Below are positions 1,234-14,712 of a stretch of 64,000 bases of DNA, one piece after another (position 1 is the stretch's first letter; each line of letters opens with the position of its first letter). The position numbers and the translations under genes are program-made. This DNA comes from Adineta vaga. Lineage: Eukaryota; Animalia; Rotifera. The notes under the pieces were generated by a model. That model had not been told where the DNA came from and searched no databases. It saw only the letters and a list, made by a program, of their open reading frames with translations. Location: the NCBI GenBank assembly GCA_021613535.1, contig CP075495.1, positions 6,758,001-6,822,000 of the forward strand, read 5' to 3'.

Positions 1234-2544
1234 TTAAATACTAAATATACTACAGATAGCAAAAAGCATCATGGATATAAAGTATTTATTACCATTGCCA
1301 GTAGCTCGATCATATTGTACTTGATACAATCGATTATTTCCATCTTCACTAAATAGTAAACTTCCATCCTTTAATACTAATAATCCAACAGGTCTTCCAA
1401 ATGTTTTTGGTCCTGATGGTTCTGTCAGAAATCCATAGACGAAATCTTCGTAATATCCCATTGGACGATTGGTGTCTTTGTTAAATGGAATAAAAACAAT
1501 CTTATAACCGGTTCCTTCATTTTTATTCCATGATCCATGTAATGCAGCGAATGCACCATTTCTATATCGATCAGGAAATTGTGAACCATTATAGAAAAGC
1601 ATATCGAGAACTGCTGAATGAGCTTGAAAAAGAACATCTGGTGTTTGTGTTTTTGATACTAGATCCGGTCGTTCACTTGTTCCATTTGGAAAACGTCGTC
1701 GTGGATCGATCAAAGTTGAGCTAAGATACGCATAAGGCCAACCAAAAAATTGATTTTCTTGTACGCGTGTAAAAAAATCCGGTACAAGATCATCACCGAG
1801 AAGATCACGTTCTTGACAAGCAACATATAAATCATTTGTTACTGGATGATATGCCAATGCTGTAGGATTACGAAGCCCATCAGCGAATGTTCTCTGGTTT
1901 CTTCCATCGAGATTTGCTTGTTGAATCGATGCTCGTGGTGAATCTTCGATATTAACATTCGATCCTGAACCAATACCAACCAAAAGTTCATTGAGAGATC
2001 TTGTTAATACAAGCGATCGTGTCCAATGACCAGTTCTAGCATAAGTCATGATTACATCACCGGTGCCTTCAATTTTTCGACTACCAGTTGTCCATGAATA
2101 ACGACGTAGTGCGTCTCGATTACCAACATAAAAGAAATTGTTAAGAAAAGCCATTCCATAAGGTCGACTCAGATTATTTGAAGCGTTAGCAAATGTCATT
2201 CGTTGATCTGGATATCCATCATTATCTGTATCGATCAAACAGGAGATGCGATCAATAGATGATTCAGCCACGATTATATCACCAGAAGGTGTATAGATCA
2301 AAGTTCGTGGCTGTATGAGATCTTGAAAGTAAGGTTTGACCGAAAATCCAGTTGGTACAAGAAGTTCAGGATCTGTTGGTATAGGAATAACAATTGCATT
2401 CTTGTTAGCCGATTCATTAGCATTAGGCAATGGGAGATTGTTTACTGTGATTTTAATTGCTTGCGGTACAAATGTAACGTTTCGCGTATGAATTTGTTTG
2501 AAACAAATGATAAATATAACGTAGAAGTACATGAAAACCTGCAT
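1234..2544 (-). CDS. Glucose/sorbosone dehydrogenase-family (PQQ-dependent beta-propeller) protein, bacterial type, intronless, with signal peptide and C-terminal hydrophobic tail
   Basis: Single ORF; first ATG at 2544 (the track start 2601 is TTG). Motifs HWTR, GSGSNV, GLRNP, ERDLLGDDLVPDF, FGWPY, FQAHSA, HGSWN, GRPVGL, DGSLL are characteristic of bacterial L-sorbosone dehydrogenase-like proteins. Confidence 0.85.
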   Translation of the reverse strand: MQVFMYFYVIFIICFKQIHTRNVTFVPQAIKITVNNLPLPNANESANKNAIVIPIPTDPELLVPTGFSVKPYFQDLIQPRTLIYTPSGDIIVAESSIDRISCLIDTDNDGYPDQRMTFANASNNLSRPYGMAFLNNFFYVGNRDALRRYSWTTGSRKIEGTGDVIMTYARTGHWTRSLVLTRSLNELLVGIGSGSNVNIEDSPRASIQQANLDGRNQRTFADGLRNPTALAYHPVTNDLYVACQERDLLGDDLVPDFFTRVQENQFFGWPYAYLSSTLIDPRRRFPNGTSERPDLVSKTQTPDVLFQAHSAVLDMLFYNGSQFPDRYRNGAFAALHGSWNKNEGTGYKIVFIPFNKDTNRPMGYYEDFVYGFLTEPSGPKTFGRPVGLLVLKDGSLLFSEDGNNRLYQVQYDRATGNGNKYFISMMLFAICSIFSI

Positions 2545-4357
2545 TTCTTGTCTTATGTTTCTTCTATAAATTTCAACGGAAAAAGGACAAAATATTTTCA
2601 ATGCAGTACTTTATAAATGTTAAAAAAAGAACAAAATACGTACTCAAATAGTGAATGACTAAGCAAATTTAATCCTTATCATGCTGTATGCAAGTATGTT
2701 CTGTTAGTAATAGAACTTCACCTTGATATTAAAGAACAAACTTCGTTCGTTTTCTTATTTTAACGACTGTTCTATTTTGTTTTCAATCGATTAAAGTTAA
2801 AGTAATCGTATTATTTCTATATCTAATAATAAAGAACTATATTTATTTTCAAATGTCAAGTAGAATTCTCTAAGATTTTTCATCCTAGGAGAGTGAGAGA
2901 GAGAGAGATGATCTCTTACCACATAAGTGAAATGTGTTTTCGAGTGAAGTACAACAAAAGAATAGGATTGATCAAAATGATATTAGAAATATACATATAC
3001 GTTGTATTTATCTCGTCTCATTTACTTTTTGAAAAACAATATACTTTTTTTGCTTCACTATTTCCATCATTTATAGCTCTATAAATGGCAAAAGATAATA
3101 AAGCTTTTTAATTTGAAAAATGATAAACTTTGTCTTTTACTAAAATAGAATCGATCGTTTGTTCGATACATAGTTTTCCTAGTTTATGCTTCAAATTAAA
3201 AGTTTAGTCTTTCATATGTATTGAATAATACTTTGCATTGATTTTTCTATTTTTGTTAAAAAATAAATACGACGATTCATATAAACCAGTAGTATAGCTT
3301 ACTCTCATTCCATTATTATGGACAAAGTTCGTATCACAATCTGTTGTTGAAATTTCATATTCAATTTGTTTATATAAAGAGGCGGAGTTGAAACGTTTGT
3401 GTGGTAAGGCTTGCTATTTATTCCAGTCGTCTGCTCTTCTGATTCATTTGTTTTGATTTAAAATCACATCTTTGTTTTCTAAATTCACATTGAAATTAAA
3501 TAGACCATTGTATGAACACAATTAAGGGCATTGACCGTAAAAAATAATATACTAACACATGATGTTCGACTTATTTCGATCCAAGAGTTCATTTTGATCA
3601 CAATATACCTTCACTATCTAGATATACGTATATTACTAACATAATTTATTAACAATCTATTTTGTAGTTTATTTATTTTGACATTCTACCTTACTTATTA
3701 AACCTAATCATATTTATTCAGAAAAGAAAATCTTATCGAAGAATCTCAATTGTATTATGTAATAATACAAATCGATCTCTCGTTTATGGTCATCGGAGAG
3801 TTAATAAACAGAACAACGATAATTAAAATTCATATCGAAGAAACTTGAACGTTAGGTAATCGTCCAGATCACTAAATTTATCAAGATTGAAAAAGAAATC
3901 ATTTGCAGATTGTTGAACATGACGAATTATGTATATGTATTGCCAAATAGAACGGAAGAATGGAACATTTAACTCTTTGTGATAGTAAAGATGTGATGGC
4001 TTTCATCTATATGGTAATCATTAAAAGTTAAATTGAACATTAACAAAACGTTTTTGATTATATTTCATGCTTATAATAATTTTCATACATAAACATTTTA
4101 ACACATTGTCTATTCAGTTAAACTATGTTGATATCTAAGTCGGAGAAATCGATACAGAAATTTTTCCTTTTGTTCTCTATGTCGTTTTATACTTCACGCT
4201 TTCATTGAAAATCATGCATTCGTCTTGTATAATCGATATACTATTTTTAGGGATGCATTTTTTTTTCTAAAATATTTAATCACAGCATATACAGCAAAGT
4301 AAAAGAAACAACTAACGACATGAGTGGCTTATTCCAGCCTCCGATAACATATTTCTG

Positions 4358-4548
4358 ATTGGTCAAGCTATTTGATTGATATAAAGAAGTTTAAATGAGT
4401 CACTCAGGTGTGTAAGAAATAGTCATTCATTCTTTCGTTCGTGTTTTGTCAGCATATTGTATCTTTATATACGTCATCATTGTTTATGTTTTATAAATCA
4501 TCGTAAATTAATCAGGATTTGAATGAACAATATATTCTTTCTTATCAG
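4358..4548 (+). promoter_or_regulatory. Possible upstream promoter / non-coding first exon of the moesin gene
   Basis: ATTGG (CCAAT box) 4358-4362, AP-1-like TGAGTCA 4396-4402 and a donor-like CAG|GTTTGT at 4548/4549 in a long ORF-free region upstream of moesin; acceptor-like tracts at ~6790-6812. Motifs are short and could be chance. Confidence 0.25.
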
Positions 4549-6928
4549 GTTTGTGTTTTATTTTGTAATGTTTCTTAATTAAAACATGACTGTTTATCTC
4601 AGTAAATCATCCATTTTCCTATTTTCTCTTTTATAACTTGTCAAAAATATGTCTTTATACATCGTTTGTGTATCTACATATATTTTATTGTATTTACACC
4701 TTCAAGGCATATACATACGTATTTGTCTCAAGTTGTGACAAGAGCCAAACCAATTCATGCTTTGTTTTCTCTGTCTGTCCTCAAGATCGGTCATTCATTA
4801 TTTTTCTTTTGTCTCGTTTTTCTGTCGCAGACGACACTGAATAAATTAGTTCGATCGATACCATTTATTTATTTCAATTTTCTTTTTATCTTGAATAGTC
4901 GAATAGAAAGATAAAATTGTACAAAAATGACACGTTATCATCAAATAGGTACACACAAAGACACGTTCCTTCGTACTCGACCTCATTAGAAGGAGAAGAA
5001 GAAGAAACAACGTATACTTCTAGTATCGTTTGTCCGTTCATTCTTCTCATTCTTTTCTCTTTCTCCTTCATCGTACAATATAGGTACACAAAATTCTCTC
5101 TTTCGTTGTAGTAAATTAATGGTTGAAATCTTACGAGCCCTCATCGACGCCGCTGTTCGTCTGTATTATTTGTTGTGTATCTGTCTGCTGCTTCTCTTTC
5201 GTTTTCTCTCTTTCTCACACATAATTGACTTTCGTCTTATCTCTCTTTTTTCCTCGCTCGAACTCTCTCTCTCCCTCTTTTTTTCTTCCCTTCTTTTTAG
5301 TTGTTTGTTCACCCTATTGCTTTTGTTAAAACGGCGGCAATAGTGGATACTACTGTCTTAAGATAAATGCGAAACAACATGCGTGAGACTTAATCCTCGA
5401 TACATGTAAAAAAAAAGAAAGAAGATCACTGCTATTTATTTAGAATGGTGAATTATTTTTTCTTTTTTCGTTAATTTTTATCGTCGATGTTTTTTTTCGA
5501 TTTTCGTAAGAAAACAACAACAACAAAATGTTTTCGTGTACATATATTTTACTTATGCATTTATATGTAATTGAGTAAGTTTAATATTTATTATGTAATG
5601 TTTACATGGAGTTGAATAGATGAATACTGTGAACATAATTCGATAGTCTGTGTATTCGCGTGTTATACTTTAATTACATATTGCACTGGCAGTAACTACA
5701 CAATTGACCTGAATATAAAACAAGGAAAAAGAATAATGGGTCATAAAATCGATGAGAAATGCAAGACGATGATACGGTTGTAGTGATACTATCGATTTAA
5801 AACAACGTTTAATTTCATCGATTTCACATCGATAAAAATTGAACATTTGCATTCATATGGATGCACGAGTAGGTCAAGATGATGCACACGTTTTTTGTTC
5901 TCTAATTAATCTTTTTATTTTGATTTGTTTTTTTTTACTTTTTGAAAAATGAATCACTAAGAAGTATTGAGTAGAAAAGGATTATTTGAGAAAATTTTAT
6001 TGATAAAATGCATAATAAACATTTTTATCTAATGAATCAAAGGTTATATGAAATCCTTTAGTATGTTACAAAGAATGACAGGAATATGGCCTTCAACCTT
6101 CTTTTTTTCACACGCGATCACGTCTTAAGTGAGTTTCTTACCAAAAAATATTTTACATTTTTGTCGTTATATTCACTTTGTTTTAACAATCATCTCATTC
6201 TTTTCGCGTTTTTTCTTCTAGTTTTATTATTCAGCAGATATTGAGATATCTGCGACAGATTATATGTGTACGTATGTCTCGAAACGAGTACTAAAACAAA
6301 AATTCTCTCTCTAGTTATATTCTTCTTCTATTCACATGATAAATTTAAGATAATCTTCATTTTTCTCTCTTATGTCTTCAAGAATTTGTACATTTTTTGA
6401 TGTACTAGCACGTGCGTTATGTTCGAAAATTATATCTCATGATCCTTTTCTGCTAACAATCAGTCGATCGGTCGGCCACACACGAACCTGGTCATGGTTA
6501 CTCCGTGTTATGTCATATTTGTTCATATGTTGTACGCCCATTTTTTTATTCGTCGTCTTAGCTCATATAACGAAACACATCTTCTATTCACTGAGATTTG
6601 TCTTTAGGCAATATTACTATTGCACTGTGATGTTAGTCAGCGAAATATTATACTTCAGAATATGACCACGACAATGAATCACCGTTGTTTTTCTTTTAGT
6701 GAATTAAACAGCAGCAACAGCACTGTTGATATACATTGCATTTCTTTTCCTCCTTCTCCTCCTCCTTCAAGCTCCTTTTTTTCTCTTTTCTCTATTCAGT
6801 CATTCGTTTCAGATAAACGCACATATACATTGTGGACGACGACGGATAGACGATATCTCTATGTATAAAATATTGTAAAACAATAACGATTCAACTTTCA
6901 AATAGAATATACAAACAAAACTTCAACA

Positions 6929-9900
6929 ATGTCACCAAAAGCCGTAAGTTGATTTATTAAAATTATTATTTTTTGTTGTCATCGTTGTTGCTGTTATCGG
7001 TTTTTTAATACAGGATGAAAATAATGTTTGAAAAAAAGTTAATTTTCTCCTTTGCGATGATGTTTGTTGATTAAGAATTCGTTGATCATTTTGTCGATTA
7101 ATTAGATGAATTTGAATTTTCGATTTTTTTTCTTGAGTTATATTTTCTATTGAACTAAACGATTCCGTTTCATCTAAAGGTGTAGGATTTGATGAGTCAA
7201 TTTGATTGATATTCGGATATATTTTTGTCATGACTCGTAGTTGTAATTTGATATAGAGTTTAGTATTCATCGAATTTTTTAATGGATAGGCTCGATTAAC
7301 AGACCAATCTTTTTCTTCGAGAAGTGTTTTGATCGAAAATTCGATTGTACCAATGAGATGATTCTTATTATTTGAATCGTTGATATTAATTTGTAATAAT
7401 GATTGTTCAGGATTAACAAGCATAAACATGAAACTTTTCATCCAACATGGATTGGTTGAATTTTTAATTATTGAAGTTTTCTCTTCATAATTATCGATCT
7501 TAATTGAACAAAATGGATAAGGTTGAAGAGCTTTTCCATGTTGAGTTGATGGTAATTGTTCGGCTCGTTCAATATAAACGATTAGTAATGATGTAGATAA
7601 TGTATGAGACGTTTTTGATAGCATCATTTGAATATGTTCTTGATTTATTTGTTGAATTTGTTGGAAATAATCACGATTTGTTGAGAGATAAAACCAATTC
7701 ATACGAATATGTATAGTCGAATTATTCGTACCAGCTAAATCATACCATTGATCGAGTAGATCATTTTTATCTTTAATACTTTCAATAGGAATATTTATTG
7801 TACCAATATAATCATCCGAACCAAGATCAGCATCGAATATAGATATCTATAGCTCTCAAAAATATCGATTGTAATGAGTTCATTACTACTATTTCATTCT
7901 TTCCGGACCCGTTAGCTGTTAATGAAGACTATCAATTAGATGAAAGATCTAGATCAATCTTATATGTACAACTATGGTCGTTTACTAGAATAAGTAACTT
8001 ATCTTCCTGTACCATAGATTAATAGTATTAGATAGAAGAACGATTCGTGTTTGATTGAGAATAAAACACATACCTGAAGTTGTTGTGTGTTGGATTCTTC
8101 AATAGGTATTTCAAATGTTTCATACCATTTGGGATTGTTATGCCTTTGTTTATGTGTTTTTAATTTATATTGTCCAACACTAATTGTAACAAAAGCATCA
8201 ATAGTATGTTTTGTTAGAACTAATGAATTATCAAGTTTTGGAAGATGTTTTGCTTCAATAATATCGATTCGTAGTATTCCATCAGGTCGAGGAATTTTCA
8301 ATTGATTAATATCGATTTCATTCATAAAGGCAATGATTAATCGATTAGGTATAACAATACTTGATTGTAAGATACGTTCTAATGATAACATCAGTAAATT
8401 ATGTAAACCTGGAATTTCAATAATATTTGCGATATCAGTTAAATCAAAATCGATTGTTGGTGTACGTAGAAAAAAGACTTCTAAAGCACCAACAAACGGG
8501 ATTTTTGATACAATTGATTTAAGAATAATTCGTAATTCTCCATGTAGATACAATGATTTTATGCCAGCTTTTAAACTATGGTACTTCATTTTAATTTGCA
8601 TATCACCACCATAGAAAAATTCCGTATCAAGAATAATTTCATCCGATCGAATATTCTCTGTATAAATCTTAATTCCACCTAAGCGCGGTGGAAAATCGCC
8701 GAAATCAATACGTTCAAATGAAAGACTGGAGATTTGTTTTTTAATTTCTGGTTCAATCGTATTTTTAACAAGTTTTTGTACATAATCAGAGATTGTCGGC
8801 CATAATTGTGCAATAAATTTATTTAACCATTCACATCGATCAAAATCCGGATAGGAAATCCATGATGGGAATTCATTTAGACGTTTTTCAATTGCTGGAC
8901 GTACATCAGTTGTTAATTCTTCGAAGAAGTTTATACGTTCAAGACGTAATAAATGAAATCGCCGTTCGATTGTTTCTAGAAAAGCAAATAGAATTAACCA
9001 AATCAATGAAAGACCATATCGACCAAAGAACCAAAATAGAATTGAATAGATTAAACATCGTAGAAATATTTTCACTAGATTATAAATATCAAATAGAATC
9101 GTTTTAAGATCATGTTGAATTGTTGTCTTCAATTTTTTTCGATTGATTTTTTTCATTTACGAAAAATATGTTTCATAGGAAAAAATAAAAGCGCTTTTCT
9201 TTTCAGGTCAATGTACGAGTACTTACTATGGACTCGGAACTCGAGTTTGCCATTCAACCAAATACTACCGGCAAACAACTTTTTGATCAAGTAAGTTCGA
9301 TCTAGTCAAGCGGGATAAAATGAAAGATAGAAAAGGTTCGATACTGATTCTTATCATTCAATGCAGACTGTTATTTCCGACTGTTCTTTTAACTAACATA
9401 TGGAGAGTTCGTCTGCTAGAATAAATTTTGAAGAGATCTTCTTTTCTATAAATATTTGATTTTCAAATGTTTAGTTTCTAAATCTCTTCTACATCTAAAT
9501 GTTTTTATTTAGGTCGTTAAAACGATTGCTCTTCGTGAAATCTGGTTTTTTGGCCTTCAATATACTGATTCAAAAGACTTTCCATGTTGGTTAAAATTAA
9601 ACAAAAAAGTTCTAGGTCAAGATATCAAAAAGAGTTCATCGCAACCATTAACATTTAAATTTCGTGCTCGTTTCTTTCCTGAAGAAGTCTCTGAAGAACT
9701 TATTCAAGAAATAACACAAGTAGGAAGGAAATTCTATTTATTGAAGAAAACAAACATTTCTATATCATTTTTGTGTTTGTCTTTTAAATAGAAACTTTTC
9801 TTTCTTCAAGTAAAAGAATCGATTCTTACGGATGAAATCTATTGTCCACCTGAAACATGTGTTCTTCTTGCATCTTATGCAATGCAAGCAAAACATGGAG

Positions 9901-12158
9901 ATTTTAATGAAGAAATACATCGACCAGGATCATTAGTTAATGAACGTCTGTTACCTAAACGTGTTATGGAACAATTTCAATTATCACCTGAAGAATGGGA
10001 AAAACGAGTAGTTAATTGGTGGAAGGAACATCGAGGAATGCTCAAGTAAATGATTTTCATTGTTGAATTAATTTAAATTCGTGGATTTTATTTTAGAGAA
10101 GAAGCAATGCTTGAATATCTTAAAATTGCTCAAGATTTGGAAATGTATGGTGTTAATTATTTTGATATTCGTAATAAGAAAGGAACTGAACTTTATCTTG
10201 GTGTTGATGCTCTTGGCCTTAATATTTATGACAAACAAGACAAGTATAAAACAATAAAAAAAAAAGTTCTTCTTCGTTCTATTCTACTTGTCTCCAATTT
10301 AGATTAACACCTAAAATTGGTTTTCCATGGAGTGAAATACGAAATATTTCATTTAATGACAAGAAATTCGTAATTAAACCAATGGAAAAAAAATCACCCG
10401 ATTTCATTTTCTATGCACCAAGACTTCGTATCAATCGACGAATTTTATCACTTTGTATGGGCAATCATGAATTATATATGCGTCGTCGAAAGACTGATTC
10501 AATTGAAGTACAACAAATGAAAGCACAAGCACAAGAAGAAAAATTAGCTCGTCTTCAAGAACGGTAGATTTTCTTGTTTAATTTTTCTTTCAAATATATT
10601 GTTTTGATCTATGTAGAGAACGAATTCAAGCTGAAATTGATCGTCGTAAACAGGCTGAACAAGAACGTGAAGCAATGAGAAGAAAAGTTGAAGATCTTGA
10701 ACGAAATGCAGCTGAAGCTAGACGAGGTAAGAAGGATTTCTGATCTATCTTAGTGTTTTAATTTAATTTAGAAATCTATCAAGATGATTTATAACTAAGA
10801 GTGTATGTGAGATGCTATATTTCAAAAAAAATCTTTGATTTCGGTTATAAGTTTCCTCTTTTCTATTTCACATTGTTTGAATATTTGCTGATGATTTTTG
10901 TTTGGTTTTTATTTTCCATTGAATTGATTTCGAAAACTTTAATAGATAAAATGATGTGTTTTTGTTGTTTATAGCTTTGGAAGATCAAAGTCGAATAACC
11001 AAAGAATTAGAAGAAAAACGAAAACAAGCGGAAGATGCACAATCACGTTTGAAACAAGAACGAGAAGAAGCGGAAAAAGAACATGAAAGAATGATGGAAC
11101 GTGTTCGATATGAACAAGAAGAAAAGGATAAAATTGTACGTTTAACAAATTAAGAATGAAATCCTTGTTATTCATTAACACGTTTTCATTGCCGTAACAC
11201 ATAATCTTGACGATTTGTTCATTTGTTTTAGGTTCAAGAAATTGAAGAAGCTCGCCGATTAGCCGAACAAAAAGCTATAGAAGCTCAACAAAAAGAGAAT
11301 GAAGCACGAGAGCTTGAAGAACAATTACGTGAAGCAAAAATGAGAGTAAGTCAAAACGATTTTATATTGAATAGAAAAGACATTTTTTTATTCGATTACA
11401 GAAATTGGTAATTTATACATTTTCTTGTAAACTAATATGAGCAAATGAAAGCATTATCTCCTTTTCTGCATGAGATATGCATCTATACGTATATAAATGA
11501 TCTTCTTATTCTTCTTTTAGTATCGTCATAAAAAACGAGGACATTCTCGTCCTTGGGTAGGCTTTTGTTTTTCGAATAAATAAAAGGGAAAAGGAAAATG
11601 TTCACACCATAACCTATCTAGAATTTTCTTGTAAAGATCAATTCTCATCACTATTGTGCATTTTAGGTACTTCAAAGTCAACAACAACAACCGAATAATA
11701 ATCATCATTATATGGAACATCCCGGCGAATACGGTAATCCTATAGAAGATGAAGAAAGTGATGAAGAAGATAACAGTACAACTCGTAATGGACGAGGTAA
11801 TACAAGAATAATATCAATTTTTAAGTCTTCTCTTTCATTTCCTAGGCGTTGAACTTCGTACTAATGAATATGCTTCACGTCATGAAGAAAATCGTTTAAC
11901 TGCAACAACAAAAGATCATAATATGAAACGAAAACTTGAAGTAGGAAATAGTTCTTCTTATCATTTCATTATACGTTTGTTTTCTATCTTTAGGCACTCA
12001 AAGATGAATTGGGTTCTGTTCAAAATTCCAACAAGGTCACTGAAAATGATCGTTTACATCAACAAAATGTTGCATCAGGTCGAGATAAATACAAAACATT
12101 GAAAATGATACGACAGGGCAATACGAAAAAACGTATCGACGAATTTGAATCTATGTAA
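6929..12158 (+). CDS. Moe: Ezrin/radixin/moesin (ERM) protein, ~12 coding exons
   Basis: Exon 6929-6943 (MSPKA|gtaagt) splices in phase to 9207 ([28 protein letters not shown]); FERM motifs [17 protein letters not shown] and [12 protein letters not shown]; coiled coil; C-terminus [26 protein letters not shown], stop 12156-12158. Confidence 0.95.
6932..9156 (-). CDS. ESYT: Extended synaptotagmin-like protein (TM-SMP-C2A-C2B), 2 exons, nested antisense in the moesin intron
   Basis: Exons 9156-8074 and 7846-6932 joined by a 227-nt GT-AG intron give ~665 aa: hydrophobic hairpin, [17 protein letters not shown] (SMP start), C2A with Asp ligands ([10 protein letters not shown]), second C2, basic tail. 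Confidence 0.9.
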
Positions 12159-12971
12159 AAAAAAGCATCCGAAAAACTTACTTCTTATCATTTCTTCTTC
12201 GTCCATTTTTATTATTATTATATCAATGGTCATTCCACGAAAGTTCATTTCATCTTTCTCTTTTTTCTCTGCGTGCATGTTTGGGCTGCTGTTATTTTCT
12301 TTTTTCTGTGTTTTCTCTCTTTCTTTCTGTTTATTCTTCTAAACTGTAAGCAGCACAATCGAACAATCATATGATTATTATTATCATTATTATGAATATC
12401 ATTCCAAAAAAAACCAAGTCGTCATAACCGTTTGATTCCATTAATTGACCATCTTATTTGATATGTTTCTTTCATTGATAACGTATAGTTAACTAAAAGT
12501 TATCGTATGTTTATTCTTGAAGAAACAAAAACTTCTCTTTTTTCGTCTCTTTTCCGTCTTTGAAAGTGTGCTTGTGTGTGTGTATGTAGTTAAGACAACT
12601 AAGAATTTCATCGTGTTCGTTATTTCCTTTATTTCGTCTTGTTCTTCTTTCTTCTTGTGGTCTATTAGTTCCTATTTTTTCCGTGCTTTCTTGCTCGTTG
12701 ATCTTGAAAATAAACACCCATTCGCACACGTATGCACATATTCAACTTCAGACTATCCTTATTTTAGTTGCATGATTAGAGTAAAATCAAAATCAGTCGA
12801 TGATATGGAAGAAAACTACTTTTCAATATAAAATACATTAAAAAAAAGATTGGATGTAGAAGAAGAGAATAACTTATTTTCTTCTTTTTAGAGTGGTTTT
12901 AAATTTATAAGTATCAGCTACTAAGACATTCTATGTGTTTTTTGATGAAACTGTGTCTTTTGTAGATATTC

Positions 12972-14712
12972 ATGTCTTCGAAAGCTGTCACTAGTGCCAC
13001 AACTGATGAACCATTCACAATTGTACTTATTTCTGCAATACCGAAATCATTTCGTTCATCTGATTTAAGAAATTTCTTTTCATTATTTGTTGAAACACAA
13101 GCTTTTCGATGCTTCCATTTTCGTCATCGACCAATGCCACCATCATCAGCAAATGCTGTGAGTGTATCTCAAATGTGTTTTGTACAAGTTTATAATAAAC
13201 GTTTAAATGAGTTCATGCGTCTTTATCATCGAAAACATTGGATTAATTTAAAAGGCAATTATCTATCAACGCTCTGTCTTATTAGTAAAGTAACAAACGA
13301 AGATAATGGTAGGTAGATTATGATAAAAGAGACACTGTTATACTGTTTTTATTTTATTTTAAGATCCTTCGATAACGAATAATTTAATTGAATTAAAACC
13401 TCCAAAACAGCTCTATCCTCAAGGTAATGTTGGAACACCTACTTCTTATTTTCTCAATGAAATTAATGCATGTCGATTACCATCAACAATTATTAGTAAG
13501 GATTGATATCTTTTGAATGCCAGAAAAGCAATTATTTTATATTTTTATTTAGAAAAACTAGGACTTGTATTTCCAAAATGTCGATCGAAACGAAAATATG
13601 GATGTGTTGGTTTTGATTATGGTACCATTGTTGAACAAGATGACGATGATAGTGACGAAGAAAGGGAGAAAAAAGAGAGCGTTGATGATATGGAATTAAA
13701 AACTGGTCAAGGTCATGAAATTCTTTCGGAACAGGATAAAGTTACACTTGATAAGTTAAATCAACAGTCGGTAAGAGAAATTCTCGTTAAGTTTCGTACT
13801 CTACGCATGTAAGTTTAATTTTTAGGAAGAAGCTGAACGTAAAGAAGATGATATTACAACATCGGCGGAAGATAAGCGACTTGATGAAGAAGAAGATGAA
13901 CTTGAAGAATGGGATCGACATGAAGCTCAATATGATGATGTAACAAAACAAGATCGAACATCACCTTATTTTTTCGAACATAAAATTGAATTGAAATGGG
14001 AGAAAGGTGGTAGTGGTTTAGTATTTTATACAGATGATGTATTTTGGAAAGAACACGAAGGTCGAGACTTTGATAATTTGGATATGGCTGATGATATAGA
14101 TATTGATATGCGTATATATCATGAAAGCGCAGGTAGGTTTGAAGAAAAAAAAGATTAATTCTCATTGAATTTATATAATTTTGATATGATAGGATCGGCC
14201 GATCGAGATGGAAATGAATTACAAAGTATACGTCGAGAAGAAGATCTTCGTCAAGGTCGTATATCAAATGAAACTGATTCAGAACATAAACGAATTGGTG
14301 TTTTCGAAAAACATACAAAGGTAACTTTTTTCTTCGATATTTTTATAGTTTTTATTATGAAATAATCGAATTCAAGGGTATTGGACGTCGACTATTGGAA
14401 CGCTCCGGATGGCGTGATGGTCAAGGCCTTGGATCTTCGGTGATGGGTATGGCAGAAGCATTGACTGCTGATGGTGGAAAGTTATCAGTAAAAGACAAAA
14501 CCGGTCTAGGGTATACAGGCGAGAAGATAGAACGAAATCCATACAAACGAATGACTACGTCTAGTAGTAATCAACAACAAGATGTACGTATCACAACAGC
14601 GTATGATAATACAGAAGAAACTGATCCAGCAGAAGCACATGATCGTCGATGGGATCCGACGCGAAATAAAAATCGTTCGCGTCATATTAAGAATGTTTTC
14701 ATGAAACCATAA
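12972..14712 (+). CDS. GPATCH3: G-patch domain-containing protein 3 (6 exons)
   Basis: FRSSDLRNFFS..FRCFHFRHRP, PQGNVGTP, EEWDRHEA, KWEKGGSGLVFYTD and a C-terminal G-patch (FEKHTKGIGRRLLERSGWRDGQGLG); exons join in frame. Confidence 0.9.

Follow-up and report, generated by a model that had tools for sequence, protein, structure and literature searches.

The first intron of a moesin gene in the bdelloid rotifer Adineta vaga contains, on the opposite strand, a complete gene for a protein related to the extended synaptotagmins (E-Syts), and the two most probably form an ordinary, old nested-gene pair. Both genes lie in a 64,000-nucleotide (nt) stretch of contig CP075495.1 (positions 6,758,001 to 6,822,000), hereafter the window, which is C2:6758001-6822000 of the assembly that we searched (G000; 100.8 Mb in six contigs). 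The structures of both genes, the splicing and trans-splicing of the host transcript, the retention of the nesting in the sampled bdelloid lineages and purifying selection on the nested gene are established. We compared the window with contigs from runs X1, X2 and X5, which come from at least two studies and were taken as RNA-derived because their contigs are spliced, and with the DNA run X6; the RNA evidence therefore consists of assembled contigs, not of stranded reads. Homology searches used either single-exon references of the window genes or natural full-length orthologue proteins.

Moesin mRNA is spliced across the nested gene

Moesin is encoded on the plus strand from 6813 to a stop codon at 12156-12158, and its protein ends in …EFESM. 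RNA-derived contigs of X1, X2 and X5 join position 6943 to 9207, skipping 2263 nt with GT..AG borders, and position 9290 to 9513, again with GT..AG borders, while the DNA run X6 covers the stretch fully without either joint. The moesin contigs begin at 6811 in X1 and X2 and at 6837 in X5, all of them reach 6943 before jumping to 9207, and their depths are 287, 41 and 25 in the three RNA-derived runs (X1, X2 and X5). Since these joints were recovered in three runs, the 5-codon mini-exon of moesin is real, and the first-pass annotation of the window was correct in proposing that both this exon (6929-6943) and the intron at 6944-9206 are used. Exon 1 and a motif upstream of it are kept in a second moesin copy on contig C5 and in all orthologous loci, and exon 2, which is joined on both sides in the RNA contigs, shows 92-100% amino acid (aa) identity in the other bdelloid loci.

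Searching the downstream moesin pieces exon by exon against Pfam returned ERM_helical (2.4e-6) and ERM_C (2.2e-21), with FERM_M and FERM_C weak on the short pieces, and the model of the orthologue in A. steineri displays the complete set (FERM_N, FERM_M, FERM_C, ERM_helical and ERM_C). This moesin gene belongs to a pair of ohnologous ERM (ezrin/radixin/moesin-type) genes, whose other member lies on C5.

Moesin intron 1 holds a two-C2 E-Syt-like gene

The nested gene spans 6932-9156 on the minus strand, fills 2,213 of the 2,263 intron nt (98%) and reaches 12 nt into moesin exon 1, with its ATG at 9156 lying 50 nt from the moesin acceptor. An antisense gene occupying almost the whole intron, with its start at this position, had been described in the first-pass annotation, and all of the coordinates given there hold; the nested gene additionally has an internal intron of 227 nt. 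The exon boundary, between …QQLQ and ISIFDADLG…, restores a normal C2 strand and recurs in P0018, the A. steineri orthologue as modelled independently by NCBI, whose 665 aa equal the summed window exons (665 codons). Exon 1 is 83% identical to P0018 residues 1-361, and exon 2 is 78% identical to residues 362-665. At the same place, the intron measures 48-65 nt in the orthologous loci L010, L011, L012 and L016 and 185 nt in A. steineri; in L029, the called open reading frame (ORF) continues in frame across the 54 nt found there.

In exon 1, Pfam SMP_LBD matches residues 104-276 (5.9e-41; profile positions 1-178 of 180), and two C2 matches (4.7e-11 and 9.4e-19) follow, the stronger of them in exon 2. 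Residues ~27-60 are hydrophobic, with GRYG in the middle and a 19-residue Kyte-Doolittle mean of 1.8, and are a candidate hairpin at the level of sequence only. C2A keeps the acidic Ca-binding residues (…LD…, …IDAF…, DADLGSDD), and C2B is without them; a C2B of this kind resembles Ca-independent C2 domains, with E-Syt2 as the comparison. The tail carries the motif IQIHLIN…FxxxFSSC(I/L)KK, which is common to four of the five aligned orthologues, and continues after FSSC for about 24 aa that are specific to this lineage. Domain searches found no third C2, either in the window or in P0017, P0018 and P0019, which are full-length orthologues; three C2 domains are present in P0020, the canonical bdelloid paralogue.

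In animal E-Syts, which carry three or five C2 domains, the C-terminal one (C2C or C2E) binds phosphatidylinositol 4,5-bisphosphate (PI(4,5)P2) in the plasma membrane. The identification of the nested gene as an E-Syt, made in the first-pass annotation, thus stands in that this is an SMP/C2 gene, but the protein has two C2 domains rather than the three to five of animal E-Syts. Judged from its domain content, the nested gene is a bdelloid-specific, shortened E-Syt paralogue composed of a predicted hairpin, SMP, C2A, C2B and a basic, Cys-containing tail that replaces C2C. Coordinates of both genes are collected in Table 1.

Table 1. Features of moesin and of the nested E-Syt-like gene, in positions of the window (UTR, untranslated region; CDS, coding sequence; SL, spliced leader).
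Feature	Position	Strand	Remarks
ERM/moesin exon 1	6813-6943	+	131 nt; CDS 6929-6943 = MSPKA (ATG TCA CCA AAA GCC), 5 codons; donor GTAAGT at 6944
ERM/moesin 5'UTR	6813-6928 (116 nt)	+	begins after SL trans-splice acceptor cag 6810-6812
ERM/moesin intron 1	6944-9206 (2,263 nt)	+	GT..AG; hosts the nested gene; acceptor ...ttttcag at 9206
ERM/moesin exon 2	9207-9290	+	28 codons; start of FERM_N; Pfam FERM_N 8e-4 on 28 aa
ERM/moesin exon 3	9513-9719	+	69 codons; Pfam FERM_N 3.7e-9
Nested gene exon 1	8074-9156	-	361 codons; ATG 9156, stop codon directly upstream; predicted hairpin, SMP, first two thirds of C2A
Nested gene intron	7847-8073 (227 nt)	-	GT..AG, phase 0; placed from sequence and orthologues, without RNA evidence
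Nested gene exon 2	6932-7846	-	304 codons + TGA (6934-6932); end of C2A, C2B, ~125-aa tail
Double-coding 12 nt	6932-6943	both	+ moesin codons 2-5 (SPKA); - GFW + TGA stop of nested gene

On the 5' side of the nested gene, a 7-codon upstream ORF (minus strand 9176..9153; ATG 9176, TGA 9155-9153) overlaps the ATG at 9156; L012 and L016 have an upstream ATG that, unlike the one in the window, is in frame with the nested gene. Between the SMP ATG and the moesin acceptor, the spacer contains an AGCGC motif common to all loci. When AG sites in this spacer were compared between loci for a trans-splice acceptor of the nested gene, none was conserved.

Distribution of the nesting and selection on the nested gene

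Genes orthologous to the nested one were found at 50-84% identity, among them those of A. steineri, A. ricciae and Rotaria sp., and the same nesting is present in at least eight other bdelloid contigs, including those of A. steineri and Rotaria. In L010, L011, L012, L013, L014, L016, L029 and L030/L031 (A. steineri), moesin exon 2 is found on the strand opposite to the SMP gene, 24-64 nt upstream of its start. Wherever the contig reaches far enough, moesin exon 1 (MSPKA or MSPKT followed by GTAAG) is found in antisense orientation at the SMP 3' end, as it is in L015 (Rotaria sp.). Because the nesting was found in all bdelloid contigs compared, Rotaria included, it is on this distribution older than the split between Adinetidae and Philodinidae.

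In A. steineri, moesin exon 1 is located at L030:8172-8186, beyond the SMP gene. The public ERM model of this species (GCA_905332015.1, L030:3091-5916, 566 aa) begins only in exon 2, leaving out the 5-codon exon 1, and the pair is annotated there as divergent neighbours, not as nested.

In a tree, which was unrooted and thinly sampled for taxa, the nested clade (support 100/100) joins the canonical three-C2 E-Syt P0020 with support of 93/94. This placement suggests that the nested gene is a lineage-specific E-Syt duplicate that lost C2C. As the first-pass annotation had proposed, we compared rates of nonsynonymous and synonymous substitution (dN and dS) for the nested gene. Pairwise dN/dS by the Nei-Gojobori method ranges over 0.11-0.23 for exon 1 and 0.16-0.31 for exon 2, at dS values from 0.7 to saturation. 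Against A. steineri (dS 0.5-0.6), dN/dS is 0.14 in exon 1, 0.19 in the C2 part of exon 2 and 0.46 in the tail. By these selection data, the nested gene is under purifying selection and would be functional.

The C5 moesin ohnologue and distant SMP genes

One further moesin copy was found in the genome, on C5, with 88% aa identity in exon 3 and an exon 1 of the same type (ATG CCA CCA AAA CCA + GTAAGT, encoding MPPKP). Its intron 1 is ~240 nt long (L009, G000:C5:11369000-11378999, reverse strand 9108-9362), and a six-frame whole-genome search and blastn with a word size of 7 revealed no SMP relic in it. This intron is also several times the usual bdelloid intron length. The 5'UTR and two upstream blocks of the C5 copy align to the window at about 78-80%. 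The C5 copy is expressed, as record 3 of X1 and record 6 of X5 continue into C5-type sequence (depth 154 vs 287 for the window copy in X1). When looked for in homoeologues and other rotifers, as the first-pass annotation had advised, the nesting therefore proved to be present in many other bdelloid loci but absent from the C5 ohnologue.

Apart from the nested gene, the genome has SMP matches only at C2:6654111-6654655 and C5:11447620-11448170, with 38-43% identity to the nested gene, and this pair is taken to be the canonical three-C2 E-Syt ohnologues. They lie ~112 kb from moesin on C2 and ~78 kb from moesin on C5, syntenic with moesin on both chromosomes.

The coding overlap and the 3' end of the nested gene

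The nested gene ends in GFW and a stop codon, TGA, at 6943-6932, the reverse complement of moesin SPKA, as had been read in the first-pass annotation. The same 12-nt overlap is present in A. steineri, and the window and A. steineri proteins both end in TYGFW; only in these two does the stop lie inside moesin exon 1 at the same 12 nt. In L014, a different end of the frame covers all 15 coding bases of moesin exon 1. There is no coding overlap in the loci where the stop falls short of the exon, by 17 nt (L010), 23 nt (L011), 16 nt (L012), 32 nt (L029) or ~100 nt (L016). The window frame runs ~24 codons beyond the conserved FSSCIKK motif, near which other orthologues end. Since T-Y-G-F-W-stop is the antisense of GTAAGT and of GCC AAA CCA TCA, that is, of a donor and exon 1 constrained by moesin, the coding on both strands is incidental. 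In the lineage of A. vaga and A. steineri, the frame would have extended beyond the ancestral stop and been closed only within moesin exon 1, which would make the overlap a by-product.

AATAAA or ATTAAA hexamers are found at -24 to +13 of the nested stop in six of eight loci. Because these hexamers, which resemble poly(A) signals, lie beside the stop, they suggest a nested mRNA whose 3' end is at most a few tens of bases away from it and which overlaps moesin exon 1 only briefly. A long 3'UTR extending over the moesin start codon and 5'UTR, as the first-pass annotation had envisaged, is thus not what the hexamers point to.

Moesin mRNA is trans-spliced to the bdelloid spliced leader

In X2, the moesin contig carries nine extra letters, CTTACCAAG, ahead of 6811, and together with the AG at 6811-6812 these read CTTACCAAGAG. 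The end of the SL exon followed by its donor (CTTACCAAGAGGT, which is CTTACCAAGAG then GT) has 54 matches in the genome vs 2 for a reversed control. The CTTACCAAGAGGT matches are clustered and mostly form inverted pairs ~168 nt apart (for example at C5:9884354-9925971, C2:8684671-8691981 and C1:1639465-1639645), and by their arrangement these pairs look like SL RNA genes placed head to head. According to PMC1925144, which cites Pouchkina-Stantcheva and Tunnacliffe (2005), more than half of bdelloid transcripts carry a 23-nt spliced leader. Given the SL tag in X2, the excess of genomic SL matches over the control and the recorded bdelloid leader, moesin mRNA is trans-spliced to the bdelloid SL between cag and ATAAAC, at 6812/6813.

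The ~4.2 kb upstream of moesin (2600-6800) contain no ORF of more than 100 aa and no Rfam match, and an Rfam scan of 2500-13500 returned no noncoding RNA match. Two blocks, at 6506-6545 and 6711-6754, are ~80% alike to the region upstream of the C5 ohnologue, and CACGTG occurs around 6411 as well as upstream of the C5 moesin copy. In X1, a depth-2, RNA-like contig covers 6405-6554. The region holding this contig and the conserved blocks may be a moesin promoter or outron.

Weighing the readings of the pair

Under the reading of an ordinary, old nested pair, the host pre-mRNA would be transcribed through the inner gene and intron 1 removed whole. The nested gene would have a start region of its own, located within or next to moesin exon 2 or intron 2, would end at a poly(A) signal beside its stop codon, and would be expressed weakly, or only in some cells, stages or conditions. 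From its sequence, the nested protein would act as a lipid-transfer tether in the membrane of the endoplasmic reticulum (ER). Several points weigh against this reading. None of the RNA contigs of X1, X2 or X5 falls within 6944-9206, though moesin is abundant in these runs; both ends of the nested transcript are positions that we infer; and the nested intron is unusually long here, at 227 nt vs 48-65 nt in most orthologues. Within a sampling that is without an outgroup, the nesting may moreover have been gained on the C2 lineage after genome duplication or lost from C5. Because contigs drop rare RNAs, the missing nested contigs are weak evidence of silence and point instead to low abundance in those samples; X1 keeps the depth-2 contig at 6405-6554, so low-depth contigs are retained elsewhere in this run. 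None of the full-length protein matches is a transcript (P0017 and P0018 are genome-annotation models, P0019/L029 and P0015/L014 genomic contigs), and because all carry the flanking moesin exons, these matches are no evidence of transcription.

An alternative, raised in the first-pass annotation, that we regard as unlikely is that the two genes form a regulatory sense-antisense pair, in which moesin transcription would repress the nested gene and the nested transcript would mask or disturb the moesin start exon and donor, so that cortex linkage and tethering of the ER to the plasma membrane would be set reciprocally. Strong expression of the host with the nested gene undetected in the same three runs would fit such a pair, as would the retention of the arrangement in all sampled bdelloid lineages and its tight fit, in which 24-64 nt separate the nested ATG from the acceptor and the nested 3' end abuts or overlaps exon 1; in other systems, nested genes can cause transcriptional interference (PMC3192792). 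However, only the host transcript is seen in the contigs, the C5 ohnologue is expressed without a nested gene, the coding overlap is not conserved (L010, L011, L012, L016 and L029 have none), tight packing is expected in a compact genome, and nested genes are usually retained as a neutral outcome. ERM proteins and E-Syts share a PI(4,5)P2 theme, which is no evidence that the two are coupled. A conserved, mutually exclusive switch seems quite unlikely: high moesin transcription would hold the tether gene off, and firing of the nested gene would lower expression of this moesin copy. The nested promoter in moesin exon 2 or intron 2 and the antisense 3' end over the start exon would then act, for example, in embryos or on entry into or exit from desiccation, and the un-nested C5 ohnologue would supply constitutive moesin.

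That the nested gene is silent in A. vaga, an incipient pseudogene left intact only for lack of time, we judge very unlikely. The lack of RNA contigs over it in three runs, the expansion of its intron, the read-on extension at its C-terminus with a fast-evolving tail (dN/dS 0.46) and the 7-codon upstream ORF that overlaps its ATG would all be in keeping with decay, but the 665-codon frame is open with an intact GT..AG intron in the correct phase, dN/dS against A. steineri is 0.14-0.19 at a dS of ~0.5-0.6, the Ca-binding aspartates of C2A are kept, and length and ends agree with those of the A. steineri gene. The two genes could also be mere head-to-head neighbours, with moesin starting at the M of MDSELEF in exon 2 and the mini-exon at 6929 a chance match, as in the NCBI model of A. 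steineri, which begins in exon 2. This is extremely improbable, as RNA contigs of three runs join 6943 to 9207, one of them SL-tagged at 6811, and exon 1 and its upstream region are kept by the C5 ohnologue as well as by all orthologous loci; the 6943 to 9207 joint refutes the neighbour model.

Discussion

Searching the literature, we found no paper on a nested pair of moesin and an E-Syt-like gene. Nested genes are common in animals, and intronic genes are put at ~6% of D. melanogaster genes in PMC3786989. The arrangement in A. vaga resembles opposite-strand intronic genes of other animals in that a complete antisense gene lies in a host intron removed as one unit and has been stable over long evolution. 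It differs in that 98% of the intron is filled and the stop lies 12 nt into the first coding exon of the host, so that in this lineage the gene is both nested and overlapping. As for cis-natural antisense pairs and interference by nested genes (PMC3192792), the geometry would permit polymerase collision and an RNA duplex over host exon 1, whereas here only the host transcript is seen in the contigs.

The nested protein shares with E-Syt1-3, the tricalbins and plant SYT1 a predicted N-terminal hydrophobic hairpin, an SMP domain (TULIP), an acidic, Ca-binding C2A and a C2B. Unlike E-Syts, it has two C2 domains, the PI(4,5)P2-binding C-terminal C2 being replaced by a ~125-aa tail with FxxxFSSC(I/L)KK, and it is 27-32% identical to E-Syts outside its clade. 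The host resembles ERM proteins in its FERM_N, FERM_M and FERM_C domains, its helical region and its ERM C-terminus (…EFESM), and its tiny first coding exon followed by a long intron 1 has a counterpart in vertebrate ERM genes, which also have a tiny first coding exon and a long first intron. It differs from ERM genes elsewhere in that its mRNA is trans-spliced to the bdelloid SL, and in that only one of the two ohnologous copies hosts the nested gene.

For annotation, the pair means that a 5-codon moesin exon lying beyond another gene has gone unrecognised in at least one public annotation of a bdelloid (A. steineri), where the ERM protein lacks its true N-terminus. For the E-Syt family, the nested gene adds a new subfamily, a bdelloid-specific two-C2 paralogue with a conserved non-C2 tail. 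One moesin ohnologue with a nested gene and the other without it provide a natural comparison suited to tests of transcriptional interference by nested genes.

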